In this document: positions 631 through 63,622 of the stretch, piece by piece
Layout: every line of letters begins with the position of its first letter
Numbering within the stretch: the stretch's first letter is position 1
Assembly (NCBI GenBank): GCA_002269645.1
Contig: NIVC01000114.1
Span: forward strand, 682,001 to 746,000
Direction of reading: 5' to 3'
Source of the DNA: Macrostomum lignano
Lineage: Eukaryota
DNA: 64,000 nucleotides
Notes under the pieces: generated by a model
Databases searched by the model: none
The model's input: only the letters and a program-made list of their open reading frames with translations
What the model was told of the DNA's origin: nothing
Translations under genes and position numbers: made by a program

Positions 631-3600
631 CTACACCTGCAACTGCTCCGATACGGGATTTCGCGGTGCCAACTGCAGCGAAAACATTGACGATTGCGCT
701 TCCCCGTCCAACCCCTGCTCCAACGGTGGCGTCTGCATTGACGGAGTGAAAAATTACACATGCCAGTGTCTGGCTGGCTACTCCGGCAGGAACTGCACGC
801 TGGATGAGCCTGACTGCGGTCCGAACCCGTGCCACTACAATGGCACCTGCTTAGAGAGAAGCAACCAGGCTCTGTATGGCAATGCCAGCCTGCCTTACCC
901 GTTTGATGGCGGGTTCAACTATTCAGTGGCTGCTGGGTTTGTGTGCCTCTGTCCGAATGGTAAGTTCTCTTCTGAGTTCAGTTAGCTTCCGATATTCACT
1001 GAGTCCACTCACTGCCGCTTGTTCACAATTTAAACAATTTGCGACAAAATAAAAAAATTGAAACTAACACTTTTGAGCCTTACACTATAGGCTTGTGTAA
1101 GCGACCCTTAATATCACAGTGTGCTCGCAACCTGGAAAAACCCTTGGAAAAAACTTAAAAATGTTTTTAAAGGCAAGTCATTGTAGAATCCGTCGACATG
1201 TGGCATAATAAATTGAGTTTTTTAAAGTCGATGAAGCTACCTTGGCCAAGCGAACACATATCGTAGTGTTATTTGATCGTTGCATTAACATTTAATTAGA
1301 AGTCGGTCTAAGTGCTTTAAGGAATACTGACTTCTAACGGTATGAATCATATGTTATTTAAACTTACCACTATCACTTATCACTTAGCGTTACAAGAATC
1401 GCTAAAGTGTCATTGCAAACAACTCCCTAGTGACTCTTACGAGTTTTTAACAACTCAAATGACTGTAATAAGATAAAGATGCGAGTTTTGAGTCACGAGC
1501 ACATCGAATGCTTTCGAAAATTGTTAAAACAGTCGCGAAAAAGTCCTCCAAAAGCCATCGTGTTAGTGCTTAACTTTATGATAACTTCAGTAGACTAAAT
1601 AGAGTTGCTATAAGTTATAGTATTTGTCATGCTATCTCAGCCTAGAGACATCCAAACTCAGCCAGTCCCATTCCGCAATGCGTTTTTTTGGTTCGAGCTA
1701 GTCGACTTTTACCATAGACATGCTTCTTAAGGCCATGCTATCTCAGCCTGGGACATGCAATCTCAGCCAATATAGATTTCAATTGCAAACAGATCTCAAT
1801 GCTATCATTTCAAACAAATAGCAATGAATGAACGCAGCAAGAAAAGTCAGTAAGGGTACGCAACAACGCTGAGATTGCATGTCCCAGGCTGAGATAGCAT
1901 GGCCTTAAGAAGCATGTCTATGGTAAAACTTGACTGGCTTACGTAAAAATCGCACTGTCGAGATGGGCTGGCTGAGTTTGGATGTCTCTAGGCTGAGATA
2001 GCATGACAAATACTATATTAATGCGAAATGCGATTCTAATTTAAAAAGTAACGCAGCAGCGATTTACACACAAGTCGCTGATTCTACAGCAACTTAAGCA
2101 CGCCCAGAGTCGTTTCAAAGTTGCAGACAATAAAACGCCTCAACTTGACTCTTGAAGGACTTTGACGACTTGTACCGTGACATGTCGTCGTTTTGGAGTC
2201 GTCTAGAGTCACTCCTTTGCTTTTTTACCCGTGTTCCCTGCAACGTGTCCACCTGCACTCAAATTACTATCCAATATAGTTCATTTTCTGCACCAAAGGC
2301 TCATCTGGAAATGACTGCTCCATCAACCCGAACGACTGTCTGGACCCGGCCACCAACCGCAGCGTGTGCGCTCACGCGTCGAGCTGCACGGACGGCCTGG
2401 CCTCATTCACCTGCCACTGCCTGCCCGGCTACGAGGGCCCGACCTGCTCAGTCGACATCAACGAGTGCGAGCGGTTCGGACAGCCGTGTCAGAACGGAGC
2501 CGTCTGCAAGGACCTGGTAGCGGATTATGCCTGCACCGGCTGCCCCGCTGACTTCGGAGGCAAAAACTGCAGCGTCAGACTGACTGGCTGCGACTCCAGC
2601 CCGTGCCAGAACAATGCTACTTGCGAGCCTCTGCTTCTTCGCGAGCTGCCGTCACCTGCTCACGGCTACCGCTGCACCTGCAAGCCTGGCTGGTCTGGAC
2701 CGCAGTGCAACGAGACCACTCTGGCGTCATTCAACGGGACGTCCAGTTTCAGCGCCAATTTTAACACAACAGCTGACTGCACCTTCGAGCTGTCGTTCCG
2801 CACGAGCCTCGCCCACTTCGATCTGGTCCGGCTCTCGTCTCACTGGGGAGACATCCGAGTCGGCGCTCACAACTCCAGTCTCGTGCTGTTGTTCTTCAAT
2901 GCCTCGTCGTCTTTGATTGGTCGAGCCGATTGGCCAATCAGCGACAGCTTGGCCTCTACTGATTGGCTGACGCTGTCGGTATCGCAGACCAATGGCAGTG
3001 CGACATTGAGTCGCAGTGAGTCAGGAGTGAGTCAGCTGCCTCGAGCACAGCTGGTCGACGGACTGTCGGACTCATTCAAGCCGAACAGTCGAATGTCAGT
3101 TCATGTCGGCGGCGAGAGCGAATCCGGCATCGACGGCGGTGGCTTCCGCGGCTGCGTGAGAGACCTGCGGCTCGTGACGAACAACTCGACATTGGTCGCT
3201 ACGGAGACCACGGCGGAGTCGAGCAACGCCACCTGGGGAGTCTGCAGTCGGTCGGTGCAGTGCGGCAGCCCGTCGCCTTGTGAAGCAAAGACGAGCTCGA
3301 TGTGCTCAGATGTGTGGAATGACTTTGTGTGCCACTGCGCTGCGGACTTCGGAGGCCGGCGCTGCTCCGTTGAGCTTCCATCGTTCTCACTGGGTGTGGG
3401 CGGCAGCGTGTCATCAGCGAGCTTCGCGTCTGCAGCAGGTGTGTCAAGTGTGTATGGCGGAGACTCGTGGACGATTGAGCTGAGGCTGGTGACTTTGTCT
3501 CGAGGAGCGTTTCTGCTGCTGCTGGGCGACCCGAGCGACTCGGCGACCACTCCGAGACTGCTCGCTATGGTCAGTGTCTTTTGTAGAAAACCAATGAATC

Positions 3601-6600
3601 CATTTATAATTAGTCAGTTTATGTATTACTGACTTTTACTATGTGAATCTTACCGGTGGCTTTTCCGTAAACAGCGTGTCTCGAAGTCTTGTTTGGATTA
3701 ACGTCAAACAAAGCACATTGATATTTGTTTATTTATTTGCTAGTCCTAAGCGTAGTTTTTCAAAAATATTCGTCCCTATGCTTGAATTGTCCAAGAGCAA
3801 AACTGCATTGACTATCAGTTGAGCCATTTACTAACTTTCAGATTGACAACAATGGCCGTCTGTCCGCCCAGTTACTGCACAGCAACGGCTCCGACATCGC
3901 AGCGCTGACGTCCTCAGTCTCGGTGGCCACCGGCAGCTTCGTCTCCGTGAAGATCTCCGTGTCGATATCGGGTCGCTCGCTGTCGCTGTCAGTGTCATCT
4001 TCAGTCAGGTCGGCATCGCTGAGCAGTGCGAGTCCGCTGCCGCAGCTCTCAGGCCAGCTCATCATCGGCGGCTTCAGCGGCGCCAAGCCAGCCCCGGCTC
4101 CGCCGTTGAGCGGCAGCATCAGCAGATCAAAGAGATCGCTGCCATCCAGTGTCGCCGCAGCTGTTGGCAATGACACCACAGCATTTCGCGGCGTGCTGAG
4201 CTCAGTGAGACTCAACGGTGACACGCCGCTACTGCTGGGCCCTGTGCCCACCAGCTTGATTGACAGCCTGCCAACAGCCGTTAGCGCCGAAAACTCCACA
4301 GAAGTGACCACTGGGGCTCGCACTGAGAGCGTCTGCGTAGCTTCCACACCCTGCCAGAATGGAGGGAACTGTTCGGATGTGTTTTACAACTCCTACTCGT
4401 GAGGATTTGCTGATTGCTTCTTTGTTTTATTGTAGAGAGTCATTTGAGCTCCCATGACCTCCCCACTAAGATTTGGTTTGGTAGTAATTTTCCATTTTTA
4501 TTCGTAGGTGCAATTGCACCGCTGGATGGCGAGGACGCAACTGCTCAGACCGAGACCTGTGCCACCCATCCGCCGGCTCGTGTCCGAACGGCACCCAGTG
4601 CGTCAATTTGGATGGCTCCGGTGGATTTGAGTGTGAGAGAATTTTGCTTGCATTAATCTGTGATTTTTATCATTCCTTTAAATTCTCAAATCTCCAAAAA
4701 TTCCTTTTAAGAACGTCATTTCAAACAACTCGCTAGTGAAGCGGCTCTTGTGACTTTTTAACGTTTAAATTCGATTGAGATGTGACTGTTGCGTCACAAG
4801 CGCTTAACTTTTGCTAGAGATGTGACTCTAATTCATCAAGATAATCTACTCAGTGGTTTTTACAGCAAATCTAGCGCGCGCATCAAATACGACTGAATCT
4901 ACGGCTTAAAAGTCGTTTCAAAGTCGCAGACAATAAGACGCCTCAAATTAACTCTCCTATACGACTTTTTGACCACTTTTGGCGATTTGTACCGTGACAT
5001 CTCGTCGCTTTAGAGCAGGGGTCGACAAACTTTTTATTTCAAGGGCCAGGTAAAGAAGCTAGATCATTGCTGCTGGCCAGACAAGCGCGTCAAAGAGAGG
5101 GAATGGGGGAGAGAGAAGAAGAAAGGGAGGAGAGATGAGATAGGATATGTGATTAGGAGAGGAGATGAGAAGAGACAAACCTTGAGCGAGCTGGATCGCT
5201 ATTGTAAAGTTTCAAAGAACCCGAGGTCCGGATAGAGAGGCTTCGCGGGCCGGAGTTTTCCGATCGCTGCTTTAGAGTCATCTACATGTAGAGTCACTTC
5301 TTTCCTACAAGTATTTTACCTGTGTTACCTGCAGCGACTCTGTGGCGACACACAAGTTACTGTTGTCACGTTTGACACAAGTGACCATCAATTCCCCATT
5401 GCCAGGTCGCGCGGCTGCCACATTCGGCAGCAATCTGCAGTCGCCGCTCAGCACCAGTCAGCTGATTCTGTCCGCATCCAGTCTAAATGAGTCCCTAGCA
5501 ACGGTTACCGGGTGGGCTCGAACCCGTCAGTCGGACTGTCAGCTGTTGTCAGTGTCCAGCGGAGGTCGTCAGCTGACTGTGGGCTGCAGCTCCGGTCAAC
5601 TGCAGGCCGGCCTTGACAACCAGACAGCGTTGGTAGCGGTTGGCATAGCAACGGGTTTACCGTTCACCTTTAGCGTAAATTGTTCTGCGGGCTCACCTCT
5701 CAGCCTGCAGGTATCTGTCAATAGCAGCGACTCGGTCTCGGTGTCCAGCAAGTCTGCCCTAGCAACCGACTTGTTGCTAGACTCCGCTGCCAAGGTTACC
5801 TTGGGCGGCATCAAATTCAAAGGTTGCCTTGACAACGTGCGACTCAACGGGCGCCTGGCACCCCTAGCGAATCGATCCCTGCTTCCTAGCGGAGCTGCCG
5901 GGTTCGAGTGGGCCTCGGAGTTAGTGTCCGCGCCTATGATCGGTTGTCATGGCGACCAGGTGTGCCAGACTACTGTCAACGAGCGGACAGAGAATGTCTG
6001 CCAGAATTCTGGCAGGTGCACCGATCTGTGGAACAAGTTTGCGTGCAGCTGCACTGATGGCTTCTATGGCGACACTTGCTCGGCGAAACTTGGCGCCACT
6101 GCGAGCGTCTCCACGGCTGTCATCATCGCCGTATCCGTTGTGGGCCTCGTCATCATCATCTCTGTTGGTGAGTTAATGTTGATGCAGCTGAAACTGCAGT
6201 GACGGACACTTTCTGGGACAGAAACGTCAGTGAAAGACGCTTCAGTGACAGACACTTCACTGACAGACACTTCATTGATAGACACTTCACTGACAGACAC
6301 TTCACTGACAGACATTTCACTGACAGACACTTCACTGACAGACACTTCACTGACAGACACTTCACTGACAGACACTTCACTGACAGACACTTCACTGACA
6401 GACACTTCACTGACAGACACTTCACTGACAGACACTTCAGTGACAGACACTCCAGTGACAGACACTCCAGTGACAGACACTCCAGTGACAGACACTCCCG
6501 TGACAGACACTTCATTGACAGACACTTCACTGACAGACATTTCACTGACAGACACTTCACTGACAGACACTTCACTGACAGACACTTCACTGACAGACAC

Positions 6601-9600
6601 TTCACTGACTGACACTTCACTGACTGACACTTCACTGACAGACACTTCACTGACAGACACTTCACTGACAGACACTTCACTGACAGACACTTCACTGACA
6701 GACACTTCAATGACAGACACTTCATTGACAGACACTGCACTGACAGACACTTCATTGACAGACACTTCATTGACAGACACTTCACTGACAGACACTGCAC
6801 TGACAGACACTTCACTGAAAGACACTTCACTGACAGACACTTCACTGACAGACACTTCATTGACAGACACTTCATTGACAGACACTGCACTGACAGACAC
6901 TTCATTGACAGACACTTCATTGACAAACACTTCACTGACAGACACTTCACTGACAGACACTTCACTGATAGACACTTCAGTGGTAGACACTTCACTGATA
7001 GACACTTCACTGACAGACACTTCAGTGGTAGACACTTCACTGACAGACACTTCACTGACAGACACTTCATTGACAGACACTTCAGTGGTAGAAATTTCAC
7101 TGACAGACACTTCAGTGGTAGACACTTCACGGACAGACACTTCATTGACAGACACTTCACTGATAGACACTCCCGTGACAGACACGCAAACAACAGCTAT
7201 ACAGAATTGTATTTACAGAATGACACAATTTTCTTTTTACTTTTTTCTTGGCAGAAGAGTTTCTTAATTTACCCACGTGGTAGAGAGTTTAAGTTATAAA
7301 TTATTTAACTTTGAGCCTTGTTAGCCCCTTCAGTATGTGTCAGCCTGCCTATTGTGATCGTGCTTCTTGGCATGCAATGCCAAGAGTTATAAATTAATTT
7401 GATATCTCATTTTATACTGTGCCAACTTTTAATTAGATATGTTCTCAGCAATCTGCAGCAAAGCGGGTTGTAGCCTAGTGGTTAGAGAGTCGGAATCACG
7501 ACTGAAAGATTGGGGGTTCGATTCTTGGACCACTCAAAACAATTTATCAATCTGCAGAAATCAGCTATAAATCTGCAGTAAGCGGTTGTCAATCTACAGT
7601 AATCAGTTATCAATCTGCAATAATCAGTTATCAATCTGCAATAATCAGTTATCAATCTGCAATAATCAGTTATCAATCTGCTGTAATCAGTTATCAATCT
7701 GCAGTAATCAGTTATCAATCTGCTGTAATCAGTTGTCAATCTACAGTAATCAGTTATCAATCTGCTGTAATCAGTTATCAATCTGCAGTAATCAGTTATC
7801 AATCTGCTGTAATCAGTTGTCAATCTACAGTAATCAGTTATCAATCTGCTGTAATCAGTTGTCAATCTACAGTAATCAGTTATCAATCTGCAGTAATCAG
7901 TTATCAATCTGCTGTAATCAGTTATCAATCTGCAGTAATCAGCTATCAATCTGGAGTAATCAGTTATCAATCTGCAGTAATCAGCTATCAATCTGCAGTA
8001 ATCAGTTATCAATCTGCAGTAATCAGTTATCAATCTGCAGTAATCAGTTATCAATCTGGAGTAATCAGTTATCAATCTGCAGTAATCAGCTATCAATCTT
8101 CAGTAATCAGTTATCAATCTGGAGTAATCAGTTATCAATCTGCAGTAATCAGCTATCAATCTTCAGTAATCAGTTATCAATCTGGAGTAATCAGTTATCA
8201 ATCTTCAGTAATCAGTTGTCAATCTTCAGTAATCAGTTATCAATCTACAGTAATCAGTTATCAATCTGGAGTAATCAGTTATCAATCTTCAGTAATCAGT
8301 TGTCAATCTGCAGTAATCAGTTATCAGTCTGCAGTAATCAGTTATCAATCTGCTGTGATTAGTTATCAATCTGCAGTAATCAGTTATCAATCTGCAGTAA
8401 TCAGTTGTCAATCTGCAGTAATCAGTTATCAATCTGCAGTAATCAGTTATCAATCTGCAGTAATCAGTTATCAATCTGCTGTAATCAGTTATCAATCTGC
8501 AGTAATCAGTTATCAATCTGCTGTAATCAGTTATCACTCTGCTGTAATCAGTTATCAATCTGCTGTAATCAGTTATCACTCTGCTGTAATCAGTTATCAA
8601 TCTGCATTAATCAGTTATCAATCTGCAGTAATCAGTTATCAATCTGCAGTAATCAGTTGTCAATCTACAGTAATCAGTTATCAATCTGCAGTAATCAGTT
8701 ATCAATCTGCTGTAATCAGTTATCAATCTGCTGTAATCAGTTATCAATCTGCAGTAATCAGTTGTCAATCTACAGTAATCAGTTATCAATCTGCAATAAT
8801 CAGTTATCAATCTGCTGTAATCAGTTATCAATCTGCTGTAATCAGTTATCAATCTGCAGTAATCAGTTATCAATCTGCAGTAATCAGTTGTCAATCTACA
8901 GTAATCAGTTATCAATCTGCTGTAATCAGTTATCAATCTGCTGTAATCAGTTATCAATCTGCAGTAATCAGTTGTCAATCTACAGTAATCAGTTATCAAT
9001 CTGCAATAATCAGTTATCACTCTGCTGTAATCAGTTATCAATCTGCTGTAATCAGTTATCAATCTGCTGTAATCAGTTATCAATCTGCAGTAATCAGTTA
9101 TCAATCTGCAGTAATCAGTTGTCAATCTACAGTAATCAGTTATCAATCTGCAGTAATCAGTTATCAATCTGCTGTAATCAGTTATCAATCTGCTGTAAAC
9201 AATTATCAATCTGCTGTAATCAGTTATCAATCTGCAGTAATCAGTTATCAATCTGCAGTAATCAGTTATCAATCTGCAGTAATCAGCTATTAATCTGGAG
9301 TAATCAGCTATCAATCTGCTGTAATCAGTTATCAATCTGTATTAATCCACTTCCTGAACCGGTCTTATGCAAAGTTTAAAATTCTAAGCCGGCAAACTCT
9401 ACTAAAAGCAAGCAAAATCGTAAAATGACTTTATTGTTATTATTTAATTTTTATTTCAACCCGAACTTCCAGTTGCAGTGCTGCTTTTCAAGTACGTGCA
9501 GAACCGTCGCAAAGAGTCTGGCACCTACGGTCCGTCCAAGGCTGAGAGTCGGAGCAACGCCCACGCGCAGGCCCAGCCACCTGTGAGGCCACCGCCTGAG

Positions 9601-9615
9601 GAGCGCCTCATTTGA
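631..9615 (+). CDS. crb: Crumbs ortholog, 3' part (EGF repeats - 3 LamG domains with interspersed EGF - TM - FERM-binding/PDZ-binding tail); 5' exons lie upstream of the window
   Basis: Exons with GT-AG borders and continuous frame: 631-959, 2299-3569, 3842-4398, 4508-4632, 5406-6167, 9473-9615. Contains the Crumbs-type EGF with a long insertion ([30 protein letters not shown]), three LamG domains and a TM segment ([23 protein letters not shown]). The tail [18 protein letters not shown]...[12 protein letters not shown] carries the GTY and ERLI motifs diagnostic of Crumbs. Confidence 0.93.
1400..2245. repeat. Unclassified interspersed repeat in a crb intron (second copy ~4710-5340), here interrupted by a foldback MITE
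   Basis: Shares blocks with 4710-5340 (caaacaactc.ctagtga; gtcgtttcaaagt.gcagacaataa.acgcctcaa; tgtaccgtgacat.tcgtcg; tagagtcact). Boundaries are approximate. Confidence 0.55.
1616..2017. mobile_element. Foldback MITE with long TIRs and TA flanks (Tc1/mariner-type target)
   Basis: TA|TAGTATTTGTCATGCTATCTCAGCCTAGAGACATCCAAACTCAGCCAG ... CTGGCTGAGTTTGGATGTCTCTAGGCTGAGATAGCATGACAAATACTA|TA. The arms stay inverted for roughly 150 bp and there is no ORF. Confidence 0.85.
5016..5269. mobile_element. Non-autonomous hAT (Buster-like) element
   Basis: Exact 8-bp TSD CTTTAGAG at 5008-5015 and 5270-5277 (central TA). Imperfect TIRs CAGGGGTCGACAAAC and GTTTTCCGATCGCTG. Confidence 0.8.
6225..7186. repeat. 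15-bp minisatellite (GACAGACACTTCACT)n in the last crb intron
   Basis: Direct tandem periodicity; it produces the spurious (DTSLT)n and (SEVSV)n ORFs. Confidence 0.95.
7463..7541 (+). mobile_element. tRNA-like SINE head (family 2)
   Basis: A box TAGCCTAGTGG and B box GGTTCGATTC; homologous to the 5' end of the SINE at 60627. Confidence 0.7.
7545..9345. repeat. 21-bp minisatellite (AATCAGTTATCAATCTGCAGT)n in the last crb intron
   Basis: About 1.8 kb of tandem 21-mers with point variants and no unique spacers. Confidence 0.95.
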
Positions 9616-9703: not shown

Positions 9704-11340
9704 CTTGCTAATTTCCATTGCGATATATTGTCCTGAAATATTGTGGTTATTAGATGTTTAATAACGCGTCATAAAGATTTAATAGTTTTTATGGTACATG
9801 TATTGACTGTTTTATTATTAGTAGAAGTGTTGTACAAAAATGTTGTAAATTGAGTACAGTATTGAGGTGTGGGCGGGTTCACTGCAGTAACATTCCACTG
9901 TGTTTTTAACTGTGCTTGAGAACATTCTCAGTTTTCTGTTTATAACCAGCAGATATTCACAAGTGCTTCCTGTACTATTAGGCGCATACATTTTCATTGA
10001 TATTTTATTTCCAAGCAGACAGCTTAACTGTTGATATTTTTCCAGCCGTATATTAAAAATTGTTATAATCAGCTTAAAATATGTCGCGTATATTTTAAAA
10101 ATCCAATTTGACTGTCCTGCAGAACTGCATTTTAGATGATAAGCACGCTGTTTCATAATAATTAACTAATTAAGTGCTTTTCTACGAGCTGAAATGGTGG
10201 GCTCGCGAAAAAAAATTGTATATTTTTTTAAATCCAATCTTATATTTCCAGGTTTTTACTTGTAATTGTGTGTTTTTTAGTTTTAATGCACTCAATCGAT
10301 CAAAAGTATTGCTTAGATTGGCACATTCCACATTGGCCTTTGGTGTGGTCGCTTCGATTCGATTCGATTCGATTTTTATTTTTCTAGCTCAACTAAAATT
10401 GAGTAAAGAAACTTTTTGATATGCTACCCCTATTTCAATTAACGACTGATAATGTGTGACATAATTTTTATTCCAAACAGCTGCAGCAGTTTTTAGCGGG
10501 CATGTTGTACTTAAATGTTGAATTTATTATGAATACACGAGTTGCGTTTTTATTTCAAATTTATCACAATGATTTATCATGCATTGCTTCATCGGCAGTT
10601 TAAATAACTAATCATGCTCAAATCTATTTATAATATTGTTTATACTTTTCATTTTTCAATCTTGGTAGATAGATTCAAATTACTAATAACTAAACTTAGT
10701 GCTCGAGCTTTGATGCAACCCAGCTTTTCCGACGTGGTTTTCTTGATTACTTTCTCCTTCCAGAAACGTTAAACATTTAAAGTAGAAAAAAGGTAGCATT
10801 AGTGACAGTATATTTTGAGACAATGCAGCTGTAATATGAGCGTTACTGACCGCTCTCCAATATCACTTCTTGTGCTGATGTGAATGAAGCTTGGAAAGAA
10901 AGCACTTTTCCGCCCGTCGAAACACCAAGGGGGATCCCGCCTTCGACAGCAACGCAGGCACACAAAATTCCAAAACACGGGCCAACTTGAGTTTGCGCAC
11001 CTTCTCAAACAAGAATCAACAAGTCTGTAGCTCACCGGACCTTTGAGATATTCGGCGATTCTGCCAGAAGGTTGGATTTTTCTCCATAAGCGCTAGCATA
11101 TTCAATTTAGGAAGATTTGAACATTCAATGGGCCTCGTACATTGAAGATTATCAAATCGATTCTTTCATTTTATTTAAGAAGTCGAGCATCAACTTAAGA
11201 AAAGGCCAGCCATTTTAAGCAGAAATAATTGGCATAAATGAAGGTTCTCAAAATCGAATGGGAACCTGATTCAGTGGTACTGATCAAACTGTCAAAATTA
11301 TAATGGCGATTTGTCAGTTTTGATTGCCCTGGTTCAACAT

Positions 11341-11650
11341 GACGTCAGCGGTGCGATGTGGGAGCCGTTGCTGTGCAGTAACTGGGCGGACAGACGGCCA
11401 GAGTGATCGATCTGAAAAGATTTAAACAAAGCTTAAAAGAAAAACATCTTGAAATCCACTAAGAGTACCAGAATGGACACTGACCGTAGCGAGCAGTCTC
11501 GGAGTGGTCGCCGAGTTGCTCGGGTCGCCCAGCAGCAGCAGAAACGCTCCTCGAGACAAAGTCACCAGCCTCAGCTCAATCGTCCACGAGTCTCCGCCAT
11601 ACACACTTGACTCATTTGGGAAAGAAGCAAAACTTGCTGACGATTCTCGC
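11341..11650 (-). pseudogene. Orphan fragment of a Crumbs-like paralog (LamG2 exon end, intron, next exon start)
   Basis: The minus strand encodes [53 protein letters not shown]|gtcagt...tttcag|[24 protein letters not shown]. Homology stops abruptly at both ends. Confidence 0.8.
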
Positions 11651-11689
11651 TAGTATCAATAGATACCAAAGAGCGCCAGCATCAGGGGA

Positions 11690-12290
11690 TTTAGCACCAG
11701 GGGCTTTAGCACCAGGGGCTTTAGCACCAGGGGCTTTAGCACCAGGGGCTTTAGCACCAGGGGCTTTAGCACCAGGGGCTTTAGCACCAGGGGCTTTAGC
11801 ACCAGGGGCTTTAGCACCAGGGGCTTTAGCACCAGGGGCTTTAGCACCAGGGGCTTTAGCACCAGGGGCTTTAGCACCAGGGGCTTTAGCACCAGGGGCT
11901 TTAGCACCAGGGGCTTTAGCACCAGGGGCTTTAGCACCAGGGGCTTTAGCACCAGGGGCTTTAGCACCAGGGGCTTAGCACCAGGGGCTTTAGCACCAGG
12001 GGCTTTAGCACCAGGGGCTTTAGCACCAGGGGCTTTAGCACCAGGGGCTTTAGCACCAGGGGCTTTAGCACCAGGGGCTTTAGCACCAGGGGCTTTAGCA
12101 CCAGGGGCGCCAGAACCAGGGGCTTTAGCAGCAAGGGCTTTAGCACCAGGGGCTTTAGCACCAGGAGCTTTACCACCAAGGGCTTTAGCACCAGGGGCTT
12201 TAGCACCAGGGGCTTTAGCACCAGGGGCTTTAACACCAGGGGCTTTAGCACCAGGGGCGCCAGCACCAGGGGCGCCAGCACCAAGGGCGA
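11690..12290. repeat. 15-bp satellite (GGGGCTTTAGCACCA)n with a GGGGCGCCAGCACCA variant
   Basis: Tandem array; the same family occurs at 28428-28490, 29515-30228 and 56546-56655. Confidence 0.95.
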
Positions 12291-15196: not shown

Positions 15197-18100
15197 TCAG
15201 AAAAACACCTCCTGTGGACAAGGCGGCATTCCGTCCGGTCTCAGGTGTCCAACTCGAACACCGGTTGGGCCGTTCAAGTCGAATCTGTCCCAAACCCACG
15301 GGCTTCGATGCTTCTCGTCGTGAGCTCGTCGGAGCTTCAGGAAAACAAGAATACCTGCAGGTGAAAATGATTTGAACAGAATAACGAAGCCTCGCTCGTT
15401 AGTTATGTAAAACAACGGACTCACCAATGCAGGCGCCAATGATAATGATCGTGGATGAAACAATTCCTGCGATCAATGCACTCGCACTTCTAGGCGAGTC
15501 TTTATTTGAATCCTTGTCAGAACACGTAGGACCTTGCCACCCATCTGCACACTCACATCTGTAACACATTGGAGTCAGATGCGGTGATAGAATACAATTT
15601 GGGTTACTACTCGTATTTAGCTACCTTAACTAAACTTACCTATAGGTGACAAAGAAAATATTCAAACACGTAGCGCCATTCTGACAAGATTTTGAAGTCT
15701 CACAAGGAGTTTCAGCTTCAGTGATAAAAGCGACTCCTTCTGACTTGCTGGCAACAATGGCTGCTGGAAGCCTGTCGGTCCAACTAAAATCGTTTTGCAC
15801 GAGGATCAACGCCCAATCCGAATTAATTTTAAGGGCACCAATAACACCTCGAAACGCAGAAATATTGGATGAAAGAAGCCGAGCAACGGCAGTTGGCAGT
15901 GACGCCAGCGATCGTCTTGATCGCCTGCTGGGATTAAACGATGGAGCCGGAGCTGGCTTGGCGCCGCTGAAGCCGCCGATGATGAGCTGGCCTGACAGCT
16001 GCGGCAGCGGACTCGCACTGCTTAGCGATGCAGAACTGACTGAAGATGACACTGACAGTGACAGCGAGCGACCCGATATCGACACGGAGATATTTACGGA
16101 GACGAAGCTGCCGGTGGCCACCGTGTCTGGGGATGTCAAGGCTGAAATGTGGGAGCCGTTGCTGTGTAATAATTGGGCGGACAGACGGCCTTCGTGATCG
16201 ATCTGAAAATATTGAAACGAACATTGACTTTTAGAGATGAAAAAATGAATATAATACAATCCACAAAAGAGCACCATAATGGACACTGACCGTAGCGAGA
16301 AGTCTCGGAGTGGTCGCCGAGTCGCTCGGGTCGCCCAGCAGCAGCAGAAACGCTCCTCGAGACAAAGTCACCAGCCTCAGCTCAATCGTCCACGAGTCTC
16401 CGCCAGACAAACTTGACGCATTTGGCAGAGAAGCGAAACTCGCAGACGATACAAGTCCGCTTATGCCGAACGAGTACTGTGGAAGCAGCACGGAGCAGTT
16501 TTTGCCTCCGAAGTGAGCGAGGCAGCCGGTGCAGGCATAATCCGCTACCAGGTCCTTGCAGACGGCTCCGTTCTGACACGGCTGTCCGAACCGCTCGCAC
16601 TCGTTGATATCGACTGAGCAGGTCGGGCCCTCGTAGCCGGGCAGGCAGTCGCAGGTGAAACTTCTGACACCGTCGGTGCACCTGCCGCCGTGCTGGCACG
16701 GGCTCGACGCGCAATCCTCGATCTTGGAGCTGCAGGTGTCGCCTTGGAAGTCGACGCGAGAGCAATCGCAGGTGAACCTGAAATGATGACGTTGATTTTA
16801 TTTCGCTAGATTTGGCTTTTGTTATCTGAATTGTACACAATTGGCAAACATGTTTTCATTGTGCTTGCGGTTTTTAATTAGTGACATTATTTTACTAAAA
16901 ATGCCTGTTTTCAAGCCTCACATACATATAAATGTGTGATTTAAACTGATGTAAAAACTTCTGTTCTGACCAGCAATGACCTAAATCAATACGTTTCCCC
17001 AATGCGTTCTTTCTTATATTATCAGACTCAACGATTGCAATAATGTGAGAAGCGTTTAGCAGTAACTTTCCGTTAATAGTATACACCATTTTACCTCCTA
17101 TTTTGAAAAAAAGTCTTGTTCAAAAGAAACTAGCAGTACTTCAATTCAAACACTAAGAAATATCAGTCCTCGCGGAAATTCAATTCAAACAAGGTCCCTT
17201 TTTATTGAAACAGAAGACATTTAATTCAGACTGTCTGTGGCCAAAATTGTCCACAAAGTGACGCCCATGCGCAGATTTAAAATTCAAAAGAAACAAAGTT
17301 ACATTCTATTCCAGCAAAGAGATAAAACACAGCATATTATCGAAAATAAGAGTAAAATAAAAAACAGGAACATGACAAGAAGGACAAGACAAGATAGAAA
17401 AATTGGAGCAATGGAAGAGGTCAAAGATAAAATTGACAACACGACACGAACCATCGCCACTCATCCAACATCCAATCGTATAGAGCATTAAGCAGCGGCT
17501 CTGCTCTCTGTTTGGTGGGTCACTGGGTCCGACAGAAGTTCAGGTGAGTGCTCGGGAATGTGTGAATGTCTGCTTACCCACAATATTATATAATATACAA
17601 ATTTATATAAGTAACGCAGAAGCAGATCATGCGATGAAGACATCAGGTTTTTATCCTCACTTTTAGCGATTGGCAGCTTGAAAGCGAGGTATTATTGCCA
17701 TGTTGTATAGCAGCTCGCGTTTTCGTGTCGGCTTTGTGACAACTTAACAAATGCACAAAAATGCTTTAAAGCACGATGGAAACACTCGGAAATCTAACTT
17801 CCAGGTCCTTAAAATACGTATTAATAACTATATACATGTATGATAGAAGCGAACCTAGTACCTGTATGCCACTAAGAACCCAACCCCGAAGACGCTGTCT
17901 AGAGCACGCACACTCAAGAACCGAACCACAAGGCAACTTCAGCACCTAGAAGCATCTAACCCCAATCAATCGACCCTAAGCTCAAACCCAAAGCACCCAA
18001 AAAGAACTCAACCGCAAGCACCCAACCACAACCCATCCTCAAGCACCCAACCACTATGCAACCCCAAGCATCTAACTCAACAAGGACGCAATCGTAACCC

Positions 18101-44615: not shown

Positions 44616-44623
44616 CTCGCACG

Positions 44624-45715
44624 CTAGTTTTTTGAAAATTGGCCCGGGTCCCCATCAGCGTGGGCTCGGGCTTCAGAGTGCGGCTGTGAGCACCTGCGGC
44701 ACTGATGGGCGAAGCGGCAGTGAGTTCTGTTGCAGCCGCTAAGACTGTTGAAGTCGAAACAGACAGGTGGCTGCGTTCGCTTTTTAGGCGCTGTTGCGTT
44801 TATCATTTTTGTTGGTGCCATCAAGTGTGTTGCCACCAGACCCAGGTCTGCGCTAACAGCGCTCCACCGCGTTCCATCATGCTGGAGAAGCCGACATTCG
44901 TCATCATATCTCATGACTTTAGTGCGATCGAAGCCTAAATCTAGCAGGTCACCAATTCTAGCGTTATGTCGGAGATGATCGATCAACTCGGATGAATCGA
45001 TTCTGCCATCAACAATGCGCAGCAGTTTGCCATCACGCAGCATTTGCACCAGTAAGTTACAGCTACCGGAGATGAAATCGCCAAACGACAGTGACTCGGG
45101 ACTGACGTGTCTCAACCTCTCTGGCTTTGCCGCTCCCACAACAGACTGGCTTCCTTGTCTCCGCTTACGCTCACTGATAAAATCAACGACTCTGTACACC
45201 GCCGGCGCCTGAGCATGCGAAGTTGCAGCCCCAGCCTGCCCGAGTATACACTCGCCAACCAAATCATGCCACTCACCGGGAGTCTGATCACGTTCTCTCG
45301 CAGCCGCCGTGCCACTGTGACGCGCTTCAGCGAGCTCGGCTTCGAGCTGAGCCTCTCTTTTTTTCAGGTCCAGCAGCCGAATGCGCAGTTCAGTCTCTCG
45401 CAGCTGATCCTCGAGACCGCCTCCCGTCGCCGCCCGACCCTCGGCCGAGGCGCCCACCGCCGGTAGCATCTCGTCCTCAGGTGGAGCCAGACTTAGCTCG
45501 GGTGCGCCCGCATTCGTCGGTGATGTCTTGTCATCTTGAGCACGACGAGATGAGCCTCTGTCCTGCTCCAACGCCTGCCGCTCAAGCTCCTTGGCAATGC
45601 TGAGTTTTAGACGACTTGTTAGCTCTTGCTTATTGCCATTAGTAGACAGGCCGCGCTCACTAAGGGCTTCTCGTAGCGCTTTGTTAGTTGCGGGCAGTAC
45701 AAGGCTATCTGCCAT
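44624..45715 (-). CDS. Gag-like ORF1 of the Ngaro element, with an N-terminal SAP-like motif and a C-terminal CCCH-type zinc finger
   Basis: LREALSERGLSTNGNKQELTSRL (SAP pattern), a coiled-coil segment, and CFDFNSLSGCNRTHCRFAHQCRRCSQPH. Confidence 0.85.
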   Translation of the reverse strand: MADSLVLPATNKALREALSERGLSTNGNKQELTSRLKLSIAKELERQALEQDRGSSRRAQDDKTSPTNAGAPELSLAPPEDEMLPAVGASAEGRAATGGGLEDQLRETELRIRLLDLKKREAQLEAELAEARHSGTAAARERDQTPGEWHDLVGECILGQAGAATSHAQAPAVYRVVDFISERKRRQGSQSVVGAAKPERLRHVSPESLSFGDFISGSCNLLVQMLRDGKLLRIVDGRIDSSELIDHLRHNARIGDLLDLGFDRTKVMRYDDECRLLQHDGTRWSAVSADLGLVATHLMAPTKMINATAPKKRTQPPVCFDFNSLSGCNRTHCRFAHQCRRCSQPHSEARAHADGDPGQFSKN

Positions 45716-51400: not shown

Positions 51401-53554
51401 AGTTATCATTGTAGTCATCGCGATAGTCTGTAGTTTTAGAAATATTATTACAGCAGGCATTTGTTGGCAGTAAGGCAGTAATGCTTCATAAATTTAATCT
51501 CACCTTTCGGACACTGGCAGACAAAGCCAGCTGCTAGGGAGTAGTTGAAGGTGCCGTTGAATGGCGGCGGAAGTGACGGCTTTTCGTAGAGGTCTTTGTT
51601 GCTGCGCTCTAAACAGATGCCATGGTTGTGACACCTGTTTGGCGTGCAATCAATTATTTCATTGGAGCAGTCTGTACTGTCAAATCCATCGTAGCATTTG
51701 CAGCTGTACGAGTTGATGCCATCGATGCATGTCGCTCCGTTTTTGCACGGGTTCGGCTGGCAATCGTCAATGTTCGTCTCGCAGTTCTGACCTGCAGTGG
51801 AAAATAGCCAGCAAAAACAGGAGCAAATTAAATATTTTATTTCAGAGGCTGGTACTGATTTTCCAACAATTTTTTCTCTTTTTTTGTAACTTTAGAACGC
51901 TCTGTGTTTTCACTGAGGTGAACTCTGCTTATATAATTTGCATAATTTTGCTGTAAAATACTTTTTCATGCGAATTAAGTTTGCTTCTCAACTGCACAAT
52001 CTTCTCATTTATTTTGTACCTCATGTGATTTCGGTTACAAACGAATGCTGGTTATTGCCGGACCAAGGGAGGAGTAGCACAGTGTTCTAATGATTAAGCT
52101 GTTTTCCTTTTCTACTAGGTTCTTTACATTAATTTGCTTTCTACGAGCGGATGCATATCAATGCATTAATACTTAATTTCATGCCAGTATTCATTTTTAC
52201 ATGTCATATCAACTCATTGTGATGGAGTAAAAATAGTTCGTTATGCCTTGCGGTGTTACAATGTTATGACACAATTTTGCGAGTTTCAGGCTGAGTGTTT
52301 TTCGTTAGATTTCAGGAGTCCCAATTAAATTTTAGTGTTGGATTTCAACTCCAAAAAACAATGAAAAAATGTGAGATTTTGTGACAAATTGGCTGGTTGG
52401 TCGAGCATCATGTACACTCATTCCGTATACGTGAGACGTGCTCAGATGCCAGTTAAATAGACATGCCGGATGAAGTTCACGTAGTCTGCAAGCTGACATT
52501 GGTCAGAAATAACACAAGTGCCAACATACCAAAACTTATCTAGCTGACTAAAGTTTGTGCGATACCGTCCAAGTTATTTCACCAATGCAGTCTGGCTTCT
52601 CATTTCAATATTTTTAACAAAATGCTATCCATACGCTGTCAACAGCTATCAAAAATTAAACGACAGTAAAAGTTAATACCCGACAAAGGGACTGGACTGG
52701 AAGACTCTGGTCACTCGTCATCCGTCTTCTCATCGCGAAAATCTACGCTCGTATAGTATTTTGTTAGCCTTCGTTGCCTATTGTGTCAGCAAGTTATTGG
52801 GGTCCTAAAAGTGGTTGCAATAACCTGAGATTATAATTAATACAACTTCTGCCAATTCGAAACCACGATTACACCACTATAGCAGTAGTGCAGCAACTGA
52901 GTAACCGTCCCGTGATTTCGTAAAGGTAAATGATTATTTAAGAAAATTCTACGTAACTATCAGTTTTAGCTACACTCGTAGTTCACCACCACTAAAAAAT
53001 CGATACGTATAATAGGTCAGTAATGTAGATGAAGCCCCCGTTTAGAAATAATCTGACAGGTATCCTACAGCTGACCAAATTTGTGTCGGCTAGTGCTTGA
53101 TTGAAATTCTAGGACTGACATTCCTCACGCAATTACCGGATGTTTTTATAATCAAAACTAAAAAAAACACAGGTTTGAATAGCTATTGACTCACCGGTGT
53201 ATCCGGGAGCGCAGCTGCAGCTGTACCAGGGACTGGAATCTTTGCTGCTGCAGGTGCCTCCGTTCTGGCACTTAGATGGTTCTGTTGAACAGTATTTGAT
53301 ACGAACTGTGCAATGTGAGCCCGAATACGGCTCAAGACACACGCATGGAGGTGATGTATCGGTTGGGTGTGGCCAGCAATAGCCTCCACTCTTGCAGCTG
53401 CTGTTTTTGCACCCACTATTGTTTGCAAATGTCACTAAAGAAAAATTTCGGGACACTATTTAAAAACTGGACGGCATTTTTTAATTATTATGCAGAAATT
53501 ATAAATTTACTCACACAAGAAACTAGCTGACAAAGAGATGTAAATAAATATCAT
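48412..53554 (-). CDS. Crumbs-like paralog C: signal peptide, EGF repeats, 2 LamG, TM, QEVFF tail
   Basis: Exons: 53554-53515 ([13 protein letters not shown]), 53434-53195, 51791-51504, 50760-49496, 49419-48857, 48789-48641 (TM), 48569-48412 ([51 protein letters not shown]). The frame is continuous. Confidence 0.87.
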
Positions 53555-54782
53555 TACCAGTGAACCAATTCCGATTAAACTTCGCTGGAACTCCAGCTTG
53601 CCCGTAGCTTCCGAGACGCTCTGAATTGCAATTTATAGTTTGACCTGAAAACTGTTTCTATTTCAAAACTTTTGATAGAAAAGTTTTAGTTTTTTACCCT
53701 AGGATTTTGCTTCCTATTGACAAATCTTCATTGACAAACCTTCGTAAGCTACCAAATTGAACCTGAAGCAGCAGTTTGAAGTGCATGCGTCTGCCTGGAT
53801 GTAGATTAACTCTGGTTTACTACAGGCTACTTTTTACAGATGTTAACTAGACGTAAGAACAGAAAAATTAAGCTAGTAGGGTTCCGATGGAATTTCAGAA
53901 GTTGCTACATTTGTCTTTTACTAGTATAAAAGAGTTTTCCTAAACAGTGAAAAAGCGATTCGTTTGTTATTATTTGCTCGGCTTGATTAAATGGAGAGCC
54001 ATATTTTACATTAAAAATCATAGTAAAGCGAAAAAATATGCCATTAAGAGAAGTATGTCGTTACCTTTTTCATTTTTCGCTTTTTCCGCTCCAATTTATT
54101 GTCTAGAAAAAATTATTGAAATATATAATATTTCAATTTCTTTGCAGACTTCGCTCAGAGATACTCCTAATTTGATGACCGTTAAATTTATACGAGTTAC
54201 AAAATATAATTGTGCTCGATATTAAATTGCAACTCTAGCTATCCATGCGAAAAGTTCCGTGCTCCCATACTGTATATCTAGAAAAAGAAGCAAGCTAAAT
54301 AGAGAAATTTAGTATCCTCAATTCAAACATTCCGCTTCTGTAAACAGCTTACTGTATATTGCCAGGTTGATAGAAAGCAAACCCTTTCCACTGCGTTTCT
54401 GATTTGCGTGAAAGCGCATGACTCAAGCGGCCCAAATAAACAACAAGTTTGTAAAGAAAAGATCTACAGAAAACTTGTTAATTAAGGCATGCTAGGCAAT
54501 CTACACTGAAAAAATAGGATGTTAATGAATCTATTTTTAGCTTATTTAAACTTGTTTATGAAAATTTACGAGTAATCCGTTTAAAAAGTGTTTATTTTAC
54601 CACTTGGGTGCGACGCTGGGTTCGTGCGCTCATTATTCAAACGTACTTGAGTGCTTTTAAGCGAGAACGCGGCATCAATTTATAATGTGAGTATCTGTTG
54701 AAGAACACAAAGCCTTTCAATTTGTGCGAGTAAATTAAAACCTTAAAACCCCTTAGTCAAAATCTAAGGAGGCATCTTTTAT

Positions 54783-60600: not shown

Positions 60601-60626
60601 GACTGGGGATACTTTTAAACTAGTAA

Positions 60627-60915
60627 GGGGGTTGTAGCCTAGTGATTAGAGCGTCGGTCCTCACGACTTGAAGGTCTGAGGTTCGATTCCCGATCCGACT
60701 GGAACAATTTGTGTCCTTGAGCAAGACGCACTTAACTCTGCATTGCTTCAGTTCACCCAGCTGTAAAATGGGTGCCAGCATTAGCGGGGGTAATTGAGGG
60801 TGTGTGTGGCGATCACCCAGTCCTGGACTGAACAGCCGTATACAGCCTTCAGATGCTCCTCGACAGCTGAGCTGTCGGTCGCACACCTGGTCCAATTGGG
60901 ACAGGTGTAAACTAT
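60627..60915 (+). mobile_element. Full-length tRNA-derived SINE (family 2) with a CORE-like central domain
   Basis: A box TAGCCTAGTGA, B box GGTTCGATTCC, then TGTGTCCTTGAGCAAGACGCACTTAACTCTGCATTGCTTCAGTTCACCCAGCTGTAAAATGGG, which resembles the MIR/CORE consensus TGTGTGACCTTGGGCAAGTCACTTAACCTCTCTGAGCCTCAGTTTCCTCATCTGTAAAATGGG. Confidence 0.75.
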
Positions 60916-61822
60916 TAATTACTCGTAATTTATATTGTTACTTTTAAATCACCTTTGGTAGATACATATATTTTGTTAGCTGAAACATTTCCTCTATTAA
61001 ACTGGTCTCATGTTCAGGAAAATAAAATATTGCTACGAGCGAATGACCATTGACCAAAGCAGTATAACACTTAGTTTGTACTTTAAAAAGCCAATTAATT
61101 TTGTTAGTGAGATGAAATGTGCAACCACCAGTGTAATTTTCAATAGTCATTTCAATAAAAACGAAACTTGAAACTGAATGAATGTCATTTTGAAAAGTTA
61201 AAAAACGGTCAGAGCTCACCACCTGCTTACCAGAAATGAAAAAAGCGGTAAAATTTTTTAATAGCCACACAGAGCTTAAAAAAGTGGCTACGAATAACAA
61301 TAACACAATCGTTGCTGTACCTTGCTGCTAAAAATATGTTGAACTTCTTTAACAGTACTTCAGTAGGTACATACGTTCTTTACAAAGTTTATTATGTCGA
61401 ATCCAGCTAAAATTTATTTACAACATTAAGATATACATCTGATTTAATAAAAAGCAACTTGCGCGATTTTTCAAAATAAATAAATATGCTTATAGTATAA
61501 GTGCAAGCAGCATATATGTGGTATTCAAAACTATTTTATATGTGCATGAGAATCTAAATTTTAAGATATGATGCAGACCAAGACACTGTACACGCCAGTA
61601 TATTTTGACCTCTGAAACAATACTTGGATTAAAAATACGAAATCTTACTTGGTAAAATAATTTTCTCTGGAGTAATAATATGGTCTGAAATAGTCGAATA
61701 AAAAGTTGAATAAACCAATGGTTAAAATATTACACGGTAGTTAACTAAAAAAGAGGTCTGTTGCAATGTGTGCACACGCATAACATATTAAAAAACACCT
61801 CCTGGGGCACCGGTTTGGCCAA

Positions 61823-63622
61823 CTACGATCCCAGATGCCCAACCCAAACCCCGGCGGTTGGATCCAACCTACGAGTATACTGGGACTGAAGATCCGATGA
61901 GGCGTTTGGGCGGAACAGAGTGATGAACTTTGCCACCAGGACAATAGCTGATATGGGTTTTGGGACATTAGGGATGAATCCATCATTCTTTTTATCCAAG
62001 ATAATAAGTAAAGACTAACAATTTCAGGATCTTATCTGATAAAACGGCCCTTCTAGTGTGGAACACCAAATTGTACTATATTATCTAACGTTGCAGCCCC
62101 TCAAAAGTAACGCAAAAAATTACGTTTTTTTTTCTCAAAAACCTAAATAAAAAGCAATCAAACTTCATGATTTGGTTACAGAAGTTACAGAAGCTCAACT
62201 TTTGCCAGCTCTTGGACGTGGCATCCACTGACCTAGTACTCGTAGACATGGTAAGGAGCGCCCTCCTAGGAGTCAGGGGCACCCACATAGGAGATGCTAA
62301 GCGATTATCATGTACTGACACAATGCTGAAACTTTCCTCTAAATTTACGATTTTGTATGCTGAATACAGTTAAACAAAAAGTCCTGTCAAAAATTACTAA
62401 CCAACAGCAATGCCAGCGGCGACAACAACTCCAGCAACGATTCTAATTATCGCTCCCACCGAAAGCACCGGAGCGGCAGCAGAGCACGTGGGCCCGGAGA
62501 ACCCATCATTGCAATCGCAGAAATACTTGTTCCACATGTCGATGCAACGACCGGAGTTCTGACAGACACCCGCTTTACATACTACGTCTCCATGGCAACC
62601 AGGCGTTGGTGAGATGGTTGAATCCGCGTCAGTTGCAGACCAGGAAAATCCCGGCGTGTCAGAGGGGAGCGACCGGTTCACTAGCGGGACCAAGTAGCCG
62701 TTGAGTCGCACGTTGCCAAGGCAACCCTTGAAGCCGCTGTCGCCAAGAACTACCACAGCCGCAGAGTCGAGAATCAGCGGTGCAAAGTCATGAGATTCGC
62801 TGAAAGTCGTAGCAGCGTCGGTGCCATCGAACTTCGCACTGAGTTCTAAGCGCCGTTCGGTGAAAAACCTGACGCCAAACGTAAATGGGATGCTGGTTGC
62901 TATGGAGAAATCGGACATCACGTGCTTGTTGTCAAGGGACACTCGCAGATGGCCGGACTTGGCCTCGACAAACAGCTGGCGACCGTCGCGGTTGGTCATC
63001 GACAGCAGACGGAAGTTCAGCTCGCGGGTGCGGGCCCAGCCAGTGAGGCTAGTCAATGCTTCATTGAAGCGGCTGGCCGATAATCTCAGCTTTGTGGAGG
63101 ATTGGAATGTGGCGGCTGTGCGACCTGGCGAGTTTGGTGGATGGACAAGCATAAAATGCAGTCATTTCGTCGCCATTCATAGATATATTAAGAAGTATAT
63201 ATTCAGCTAAGAAACTGGGCGTCTGTATGAGTGCAAGCCTGAGTACAGTAGGTGCTCATGAGTCAGCGATATGGATAGAATTGCTTCAGGTTGAATGCTG
63301 CTGAAAGCGTTGCATCAGGGGTGTCACAAACCTCCTGTGAGTTTGACGCTGCAGTTTTTGCCTCCGAACTCAGCGGGGCAGCCGGTGCAGGCATAATCCG
63401 CTACCAGGTCCTTGCAGACGGCTCCGTTCTGACACGGCTGTCCGAACCGCTCGCACTCGTTGATGTCGACTGAGCAGGTCGGGCCTTCGTAGCCGGGCAG
63501 GCAGTGGCAGGTGAATGAGGCCAGGCCGTCCGTGCAGCTCGACGCGTGAGCGCACACGCTGCGGTTGGTGTCCGGATCCAGACAGTCGTTCGGGTGGATC
63601 TCGCACGTGTCTCCGAAGGTAC
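61823..63622 (-). CDS. Crumbs-like paralog A (3' part): EGFs, LamG3, EGF, TM, truncated tail; possibly a pseudogene
   Basis: Exons: 63622-63332 (EGFs, ends KLTG-G|gtttgt), 63124-62402 (LamG3-EGF-TM, paralog of crb 5406-6167), 61947-61823 (AIVLVAKFITLFRPNASSDLQSQYTRRLDPTAGVWVGHLGS*). The 5' exons lie beyond the window. Confidence 0.65.

Follow-up and report, generated by a model that had tools for sequence, protein, structure and literature searches.

A tandem array of probable Crumbs derivatives with replaced cytoplasmic tails in Macrostomum lignano

A Crumbs gene facing five minus-strand paralogs

The window (i.e., the whole stretch of 64,000 nucleotides analyzed here; C114:682001-746000 of the Macrostomum lignano Mlig_3_7 assembly) lies at the proximal end of a tandem array of Crumbs-derived genes. 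We consider it likely that the window is the start of a large array in which one + strand gene (crb) is still a Crumbs, while the minus-strand genes facing it are its duplicated derivatives with replaced cytoplasmic tails. Few polarity determinants are as conserved as Crumbs, in which the tail of 37 residues is considered the working part. Drosophila has one Crumbs gene and mammals have three. Three are also known in C. elegans (PMC4359734), compared with at least 15 genes in tandem on C114. No paper on a flatworm Crumbs expansion was found in the literature searched. The family is already in GenBank as "hypothetical proteins," but without a description as a family, and its gene identifiers were found neither in searchable literature full text nor in the supplements of the M. 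lignano papers checked for expression.

The Mlig_3_7 assembly (764 Mb) was generated with Canu from PacBio, Illumina, and 454 data and contains 180 Mb of duplicated nonrepetitive sequence because the DV1 line has extra chromosome copies; its GenBank annotation was derived from RNA sequencing (RNA-seq) via StringTie/TACO together with trans-splice and poly(A) sites that had been defined by experiment (PMC5730564). Three subgenomes have been described in this neopolyploid species (PMC10733133). Our splice models were built from stop-to-stop frames and tblastn searches with exon peptides in the window plus 40 kb of fetched flank, while the C114 genes past +104 kb are represented by search coordinates only. 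Positions given as +/- kb or as negative numbers are relative to the window start.

As the initial annotation had proposed, one gene with an ERLI tail on the + strand faces five paralogs on the minus strand (designated A to E), and all modeled introns of the six genes are GT-AG. The numbers of LamG domains that it had read (i.e., three in crb, two in C and D, and one in E, B, and A, the last being LamG3) were likewise recovered by tblastn and in the models. The features are as follows (TM, transmembrane).

-6203..-3348 (3.3 to 6.2 kb upstream of the window), + strand: crb exons 1 to 3 (splice model from the flank)
631-959, 2299-3569, 3842-4398, 4508-4632, 5406-6167, and 9473-9615, + strand: crb exons 4 to 9 (splice model)
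2299..3569, + strand: crb exon 5, the 1271-nt "large exon," with EGFs, LamG1, an EGF, and the first half of LamG2 (blastn, synonymous divergence)
5406..6167, + strand: crb exon 8, with LamG3, an EGF, and the TM helix (Pfam, AlphaFold2/Foldseek, hydrophobicity)
9473..9615, + strand: crb tail exon, with the FERM-binding motif GTYGPS, the PDZ ligand ERLI, and the stop (alignment to 4WSI/4YL8)
26920-15197, - strand: paralog B, 9 exons, 830 aa; signal peptide, about 11 EGFs, LamG2 only, TM, QEVFF tail
15197..15354, - strand: B tail exon, 158 nt, phase 1 entry, ending in QEVFF
40097-33805, - strand: paralog C, 9 exons, 1081 aa; LamG1 and LamG2; QEVFF tail
53411-48412, - strand: paralog D, at least 6 exons, 879 aa modeled; LamG1 and LamG2; QEVFF tail
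59134-55776, - strand: paralog E, at least 6 exons, 601 aa modeled; LamG2 only; its own TM; tail ...ESYAKPDIVYMPKNG...
63622-61823, - strand: paralog A, last three exons (large-exon EGF piece; LamG3, EGF, and TM; tail with premature TAG)
68660-71986 (outside the window), - strand: paralog A, four further exons (splice model)
11340..11643, - strand: pseudo-exon fragment, comprising the large-exon end, a short intron, and the LamG2b-exon start (blastn, tblastn)

The crb gene consists of nine exons (six inside the window and three upstream) and encodes a 1247-aa product with an N-terminal signal-like segment (the first exon encodes the signal-peptide stretch MASHSVLTILMCALILVIIMPVTA), about 10 EGF repeats, three LamG positions, and a single TM segment (residues 1175 to 1211). 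Its C-terminal 421 aa are equal to UniProt A0A1I8G0Z2, and the junction of exons 7 and 8 (...GGFEC/RAAATF...; donor 4632, acceptor 5406) is as in GenBank BOX15_Mlig013136g1 on a sister scaffold. The tail, which ends in ...PPPEERLI and a stop at 9601-9615, aligns to the crystallized Drosophila Crumbs tail (PDB 4WSI/4YL8; E = 3.9e-4) with both GTYxPS and PPPEERLI matched; the Drosophila counterpart of the juxtamembrane stretch is RATRGTYSPSA. The crystal partners of the Drosophila tail in 4WSI and 4YL8 are PALS1 and moesin.

LamG2 of crb scored over the Pfam cutoff (28.3 bits), and LamG3 scored slightly under it (Laminin_G_2; 20.4 bits). The AlphaFold model of LamG3 (predicted local distance difference test score [pLDDT], 81; predicted template modeling score [pTM], 0.83) matched LG domains of neurexin, agrin, perlecan, and laminin in Foldseek (E of ~1e-7). 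Support for LamG1 was subthreshold (Pfam, 18.7 bits and E = 0.0026; hhalign, E = 0.0014); a profile search of the PDB returned spurious matches only, and the AlphaFold2 model (pLDDT, 44) was unusable. A HMMER search with the crb module spanning LamG3, EGF, TM, and tail retrieved 1414 proteins; ERLI or a near variant closes 34 of the 147 other listed representatives, and the ERLI-ending matches span many animals. Those matching best in LamG3 carry the names "protein crumbs" (Nematostella and Hypsibius), CRB-1 (Aphelenchus), and "crumbs homolog 1-like" (Conger).

Judged by its predicted product, the + strand gene is a genuine Crumbs in every respect tested. It resembles Drosophila Crb and vertebrate CRB1/CRB2 in its signal peptide, EGFs with three LamGs, TM, and short GTYxPS/ERLI tail (~37 aa); the paralogs share the ectodomain modules of Crumbs but lack both tail motifs and one or two LamGs. 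It has all the sequence features for the canonical PALS1/Par6 and FERM interactions, the binding itself being predicted. A search of the M. lignano genome for a PALS1-type L27_N domain (PF09060) gave no match, and the controls were equally silent. Exon 3 of crb and its upstream intron are present twice, 2.9 kb apart and with identical translation (window -3604..-3348 and -696..-440). Since this exon runs from phase 1 to phase 2, both copies cannot be spliced in series; they represent either mutually exclusive exons or a local assembly duplication.

The model of paralog B equals GenBank BOX15_Mlig031842g2 residue for residue, and this record is on the same contig. Since the matching annotation is based on RNA-seq, B is transcribed and spliced as modeled. 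The sister-scaffold counterparts of crb, C (BOX15_Mlig014908g1; P0004), and F (a further family member described below) are also in the RNA-seq-derived annotation. At the transcript level, of the six spliced genes proposed by the initial annotation, B is borne out exactly, and for crb and C the evidence consists of these sister counterparts. Gene C has no ATG of its own, its first exon starting at an acceptor (CAG/TGC TTT GCA...). The 35-nt spliced leader of M. lignano ends in ATG (PMC8629364), and trans-splicing would therefore give C the start MCFATLLLAIALHPLVISG, a plausible signal peptide. For D, neither the 5' end nor a signal peptide was found in modeling, and the same applies to the 5' end of E. 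Gene E has an additional EGF exon downstream of LamG2, and its model needs a weak donor at 57468. A UniProt model (P0001; 2210 aa) joins the E tail, a small exon at 53510-53632 on the minus strand (SVSEATGKLEFQRSLIG), and genes D and C; this fusion may be a prediction error or reflect read-through or operon-like transcription, which is reported to be common in M. lignano in the literature on the species. Gene A and the fragment at 11.3 kb, around which no other family exons were found, are probably dead copies. On the basis of the models, all members are predicted to be type I membrane proteins with Crumbs-like EGF/LamG ectodomains.

Shared exon plan and descent from Crumbs

Exon lengths and intron phases are common to crb and the paralogs, and exon-by-exon tblastn searches found, for every crb exon class, a paralog counterpart of equal length and phase. 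The shared classes are an exon of 193 nt (phase 1 to 2), the EGFa exons (323 to 329 nt; phase 2 to 1), the large exon (1271 nt, or 1265 nt in D; phase 1 to 0), the LamG2b exons (548 to 563 nt; phase 0 to 2), and the last exons, which enter in phase 1 (143 nt with ERLI and 158 nt with QEVFF). Similarity within the family reached tblastn E values of 1e-16 to 0. Additional EGF cassettes of 228 and 345 nt (phase 2-2) vary in number (none in crb, two in B, two in C, and one in A). The TM exon of B, C, and D opens like the small EGF exon of crb (C.C..GW.G..CS) and then continues into a different TM.

The loss of domains can be followed at the exon level. In B and E, a 487-nt exon represents an EGF segment joined to the large exon, in which an in-frame deletion from ...FGGKNCSV/RLTG... 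to ...GGRRCSVE/LPSF... removes LamG1. Gene A looks like its neighbor F minus everything from ...CSVKLTG to LamG3. The initial annotation had described the paralogs as shuffled from the same exons; the common origin of the exons stands, given their shared lengths and phases, but deletion and the gain or loss of cassettes account for more of the variation than exon shuffling.

A maximum-likelihood tree of LamG3 placed five M. lignano modules (crb, a "mini-Crumbs," the P0005 type with yet another tail, F, and A) in a Macrostomum-only clade (support, 100/98) apart from the Crumbs of other animals; the tree did not resolve the branching within this clade. Gene F, located 12 kb beyond the window, and its annotated counterpart P0002 (1404 aa) combine the full three-LamG Crumbs layout with a QEVFF tail. 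Since both the outgroups and two of the clade members have ERLI, the non-ERLI tails are most simply regarded as derived.

The steps visible in the sequence are tandem duplication of a Crumbs gene with retention of exon lengths and phases and changes in EGF count through gain or loss of the 228- and 345-nt cassettes. The in-frame deletion within the large exon took LamG1 from B and E, genes B to E lost their EGF and LamG3 exons, and a larger deletion removed LamG1 and LamG2 from A. The last exon was swapped for a new tail exon; since entry into the last exon is invariably in phase 1, a tail exon of any kind stays in frame. Exon-limited gene conversion keeps the 1271-nt exon nearly identical between crb and the paralogs.

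Replaced cytoplasmic tails

ERLI and GTYxPS are absent from the tails of B, C, D, E, and A. The tails of B, C, and D, like that of P0002, end in QEVFF with the stop directly after, and the QEVFF block (L-D/N ... P-x-P-Q-E-V-F-F) is kept across two different juxtamembrane types. In A, the tail reads ...AGVWVGHLGS, a stop, and LAKPVPQEVFFNML; the premature TAG precedes the QEVFF position, and the normal stop is also lost. The tail of E (...DDESYAKPDIVYMPKNG...) has the C terminus ...KRLY. The three QEVFF tails and the truncated one of A thus agree with the initial annotation, but its "Tyr-rich" was generous for E, whose modeled tail contains four tyrosines, two of them within YAKPDIVY. Tyr-rich tails (e.g., ...ETPYTFADYDRI...SPYAGVYETSTDDHTYDNL...) are found in the E-type sister genes on C114 annotated as P0008, P0009, and P0011.

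By its residues, QEVFF fits a class II PDZ ligand (V at -2, F at 0, and a free C terminus). No relative of the QEVFF tail was found in the PDB, and VFF endings are absent from the 147 other listed HMMER representatives. Word-based searches returned QEVFF genes only from M. lignano, the other hits being two fish CRB1-like matches, and they are not informative on other flatworms. An origin of the QEVFF tail from the ERLI exon by frameshift was rejected, as local DNA alignments with the tails of B, C, D, F, and A were no better than shuffles. The expansion of Crumbs with replaced tails that the initial annotation had taken to be lineage specific is supported by the LamG3 clade, the shared exons, and the lack of VFF endings in the other listed proteins; the comparison with metazoan Crumbs that it had proposed, as run on LamG3, gave the Macrostomum-only clade.

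Extent of the array and sister scaffolds

The initial annotation was correct about the six genes but drew the locus too narrowly, since crb begins upstream and A ends downstream of the window and the array is far larger (at least 15 genes on C114). Genome searches located 14 copies of the LamG2b exon on C114, as follows.

685.8 kb of C114, + strand: LamG2b exon of crb
697.6, 716.3, 730.9, 739.8, 761.4, 802.1, 823.4, 835.5, 851.9, 866.0, 879.2, 890.1, and 918.0 kb of C114, - strand: the other LamG2b exons

Elsewhere, the LamG2b exon was found on C1242 (8 copies), C1300 (7 to 8), C38 (nine), and a few other scaffolds, giving at least 50 copies in the assembly. The architecture of E recurs in at least seven further C114 genes, and two E-type copies farther along C114 contain stops in one exon.

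The gene order crb-B-C-D-E-F is identical on C114, C1242, and C1300, and the locus is present on a fourth scaffold, C1923; across all four, the tail exons with ERLI and those of the B type show 100% identity (the assembly has four identical copies of the crb tail exon), and the noncoding sequence of the sister scaffolds is ~94% identical. Most simply, the loci on C114, C1242, and C1300 are subgenome or haplotype copies of one locus, which is consistent with the neopolyploid genome. Gene A is a copy-specific duplicate, as its TAG-bearing tail exon occurs only on C114.

Further relatives were observed outside this locus. A second array (C38:125-271 kb) has at least nine members on a single strand, with LamG2b exons 58 to 60% identical to that of B (85% in one copy). 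The 721-aa mini-Crumbs (C158:550076-556006; BOX15_Mlig011649g2) has an ERLI tail and LamG3 only, and its annotated variant P0020 has a different end without ERLI. A single-exon gene encoding LamG, two EGFs, a Ser/Thr/Pro-rich (mucin) segment, TM, and ERLI lies at C282:628101-629327 and exists in about five copies.

Exon-limited gene conversion and selection

The large exon of crb shares 95 to 96.6% DNA identity with those of C (36168-34898) and D (50760-49496), and the blastn homology between crb and C or D begins and ends at the large-exon borders. For the same gene pairs, the synonymous divergence (dS) is 0.08 to 0.10 in the large exon, 0.56 to 0.77 in LamG2b, and 1.5 to 1.7 or saturated in EGFa and LamG3. 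The large-exon protein identities across all family members are 88 to 97% and star-like. Positional counterparts across scaffolds are no closer to each other in this exon than unrelated members are (e.g., 93.3% between C on C114 and its counterpart P0004 but 95.5% between C and crb on the same scaffold). The low dS of the large exon relative to the flanking exons, the arrest of homology at exon borders, and identities that do not pair by position indicate that gene conversion is limited to this exon in the compared sequences. The large exon is by far the longest uninterrupted homology, and this may be enough to explain its conversion.

The whole-exon ratio of nonsynonymous to synonymous divergence (dN/dS) is 0.2 to 0.6 between intact genes and 0.6 to 0.74 for the recent A-F pair (dS, 0.065 to 0.10). 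At these ratios, the intact paralogs are predicted membrane proteins under purifying selection.

Alternative explanations

Several observations weigh against the reading of the minus-strand genes as functional derivatives of Crumbs or limit its reach. Within Macrostomum and the flatworms, the comparison covers M. lignano. The near-identity of the large exon could partly reflect unusually strong constraint, although the low dS argues otherwise. The idea of a PDZ ligand in QEVFF is based on resemblance to known ligands. Modeling did not recover the 5' ends of D and E, the model of E depends on its weak donor, and among the paralogs on C114 the expression evidence is for B. The weak donor would be expected if most paralogs were decaying by-products of a duplication-prone neopolyploid genome in which only crb matters, as would the damaged tail of A, the stray exon fragment at 11340-11643, the stops in one exon of two distal E-type copies, the missing ATG of C and signal peptide of D, and the 180 Mb of duplicated nonrepetitive sequence in the assembly. 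We nevertheless regard this explanation as unlikely: the frames of B, C, and D are fully open across six to nine exons with GT-AG introns, dN/dS is well under 1, the RNA-seq-based annotation includes B as well as counterparts of C and F, the QEVFF block has been kept between diverged tail types, and the spliced leader, with its terminal ATG, would account for the lack of a start codon in C. The initial annotation had favored a locus for allorecognition, gamete recognition, or cell identity, which would here be polymorphic and selected for ectodomain diversity. Surface proteins that are arrayed in tandem and vary in domain number, the presence or absence of gene A among three genome copies, and the biology of M. 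lignano, an outcrossing simultaneous hermaphrodite, would suit such a locus. However, dN/dS does not approach or exceed 1 in any exon between intact genes (the overall range, including the A-F pair, being 0.2 to 0.74), the same gene order is kept on C114, C1242, and C1300, and part of the ectodomain is actively homogenized; the recognition proposal was thus not sustained, and we consider it improbable.

The array could in principle have been created by the assembly through stitching haplotypes or subgenome copies in tandem, given the redundancy of the assembly, the occurrence of the entire locus on C114, C1242, C1300, and C1923, the exact duplicate of a crb exon at -3540 and -632, and the restriction of gene A to one copy of the locus. 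The genes in the window differ from one another in their exons and tails, with dS of 0.6 to 1.7 in most exons, the gene order recurs independently on three scaffolds, and the scaffold was built from PacBio reads with Canu. An artefact is therefore very improbable, and the array does not consist of collapsed haplotypes, a point on which the initial annotation holds. Equally remote is an independent EGF-LamG family that exchanged a single exon with Crumbs. Such proteins are common, UniProt has automatically named members "Cubilin," "Delta-like," and "Notch," and near-identity to crb is found in the large exon only; yet all crb exon classes are matched in length and phase, F and P0002 show the three-LamG Crumbs layout together with a QEVFF tail, and in the tree the QEVFF-type LamG3 groups with those of two ERLI genes. 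Duplication of Crumbs followed by replacement of tails is therefore the explanation that we retain.

Known systems and possible roles

The closest precedent for a Crumbs ectodomain on another tail is CRB1-B, the vertebrate photoreceptor isoform, in which alternative 3' exons provide an entirely different TM and intracellular domain (PMC7335077). CRB1-B differs in that it arises through alternative promoter and exon use in one gene, while M. lignano has separate duplicates with fixed tails, and the sequences are unrelated. For the QEVFF tails, the relevant comparison is with other type I proteins that share a glutamate followed by three hydrophobic or aromatic C-terminal residues. The tails of glycophorin C (E-Y-F-I), syndecan (E-F-Y-A), and neurexin (E-Y-Y-V) bind the PDZ domains of p55/MPP1, syntenin, and CASK, and neurexin also has a LamG/EGF ectodomain. 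By analogy, QEVFF may be a PDZ ligand of this kind that recruits another scaffold; no sequence relation of these proteins to the QEVFF tails was found beyond the last four residues, and the 4.1/FERM juxtamembrane motif is not evident. Draper, CED-1, and MEGF10-11 combine an EGF-rich ectodomain with a tyrosine tail, as do the E sisters P0009 and P0011 (several Y-x-x-hydrophobic motifs), and the tail exons of MEGF11 are modular for immunoreceptor tyrosine-based activation and inhibitory motifs (ITAM/ITIM). The E-type genes differ in having neither EMI nor NPxY and no detected homology to these proteins, and the E tail has four tyrosines only. Hydractinia Alr and Botryllus fuhc are also tandem, lineage-specific type I surface proteins, but they exhibit extreme allelic polymorphism and Ig-like domains, whereas the M. 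lignano array shows no sign of diversifying selection and has a partly homogenized ectodomain.

On the basis of these motifs, crb would couple through ERLI to PDZ domains of the PALS1/Stardust or Par6 type and through GTYGPS to FERM proteins. The QEVFF genes, which lack ERLI and GTYxPS but have a PDZ-ligand-like end, would put the same type of ectodomain on a different scaffold, and the E-type tails would act through tyrosine phosphorylation, signaling via their tyrosine motifs. Since conversion keeps LamG1-LamG2 Crumbs-like, members might still recognize each other or a common ligand. These elements could be assembled into a combinatorial Crumbs system, in which the converted LamG1-LamG2 is shared and the tail classes (ERLI, QEVFF, and Tyr-rich) plug into different scaffolds, giving each epithelium or membrane domain its own apical identity; we offer this as a tentative scheme and do not think it probable.

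The array represents a natural experiment in which a normal Crumbs is found beside a dozen or more copies that have kept the ectodomain and discarded the tail. It separates the role of the Crumbs ectodomain, of which little is understood in either flies or human CRB1 retinal disease, from tail signaling, and transgenesis and RNA interference in M. lignano make the ectodomain question testable. In addition, it provides a clean example of concerted evolution confined to one exon, through which an essential gene with a single function comes to exchange sequence with its own derivatives. Should the paralogs turn out to be idle duplicates of a neopolyploid genome, the array is a curiosity of that genome.

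Other elements in the window

A DIRS-like retroelement lies between C and D (41573-45889, - strand), with open reading frames (ORFs) encoding SAP, reverse transcriptase with RNase H, and a tyrosine recombinase (Phage_integrase; 22 bits). The direct repeats on either side of it (166 bp) share 99.4% identity, and the element was therefore probably inserted recently. Minisatellites occupy introns and spacers at 6217-7185, 7544-9347, 11678-12288, 19473-20612, 29524-30225, and 40460-41318, with periods of 15, 21, 15, 25, 15, and 20 to 100 nt, respectively. Two of them fill most of the 3.3-kb last intron of crb, the 15-nt arrays at 11.7 kb and 29.5 kb are mutually related, and the 25-nt array causes a strong GC/AT skew at 18 to 22 kb. 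An interspersed repeat of ~190 bp (103-299) occurs with 84 to 87% identity at more than 35 other sites in the genome. Two ORFs, at 60623-60937 (- strand) and -10152..-9949 (+ strand), share the peptide ...CIRLFSPGLGDRHTHPQLPPLMLAPILQLGELKQCRVKC..., which has no Pfam match; they are probably another dispersed repeat.

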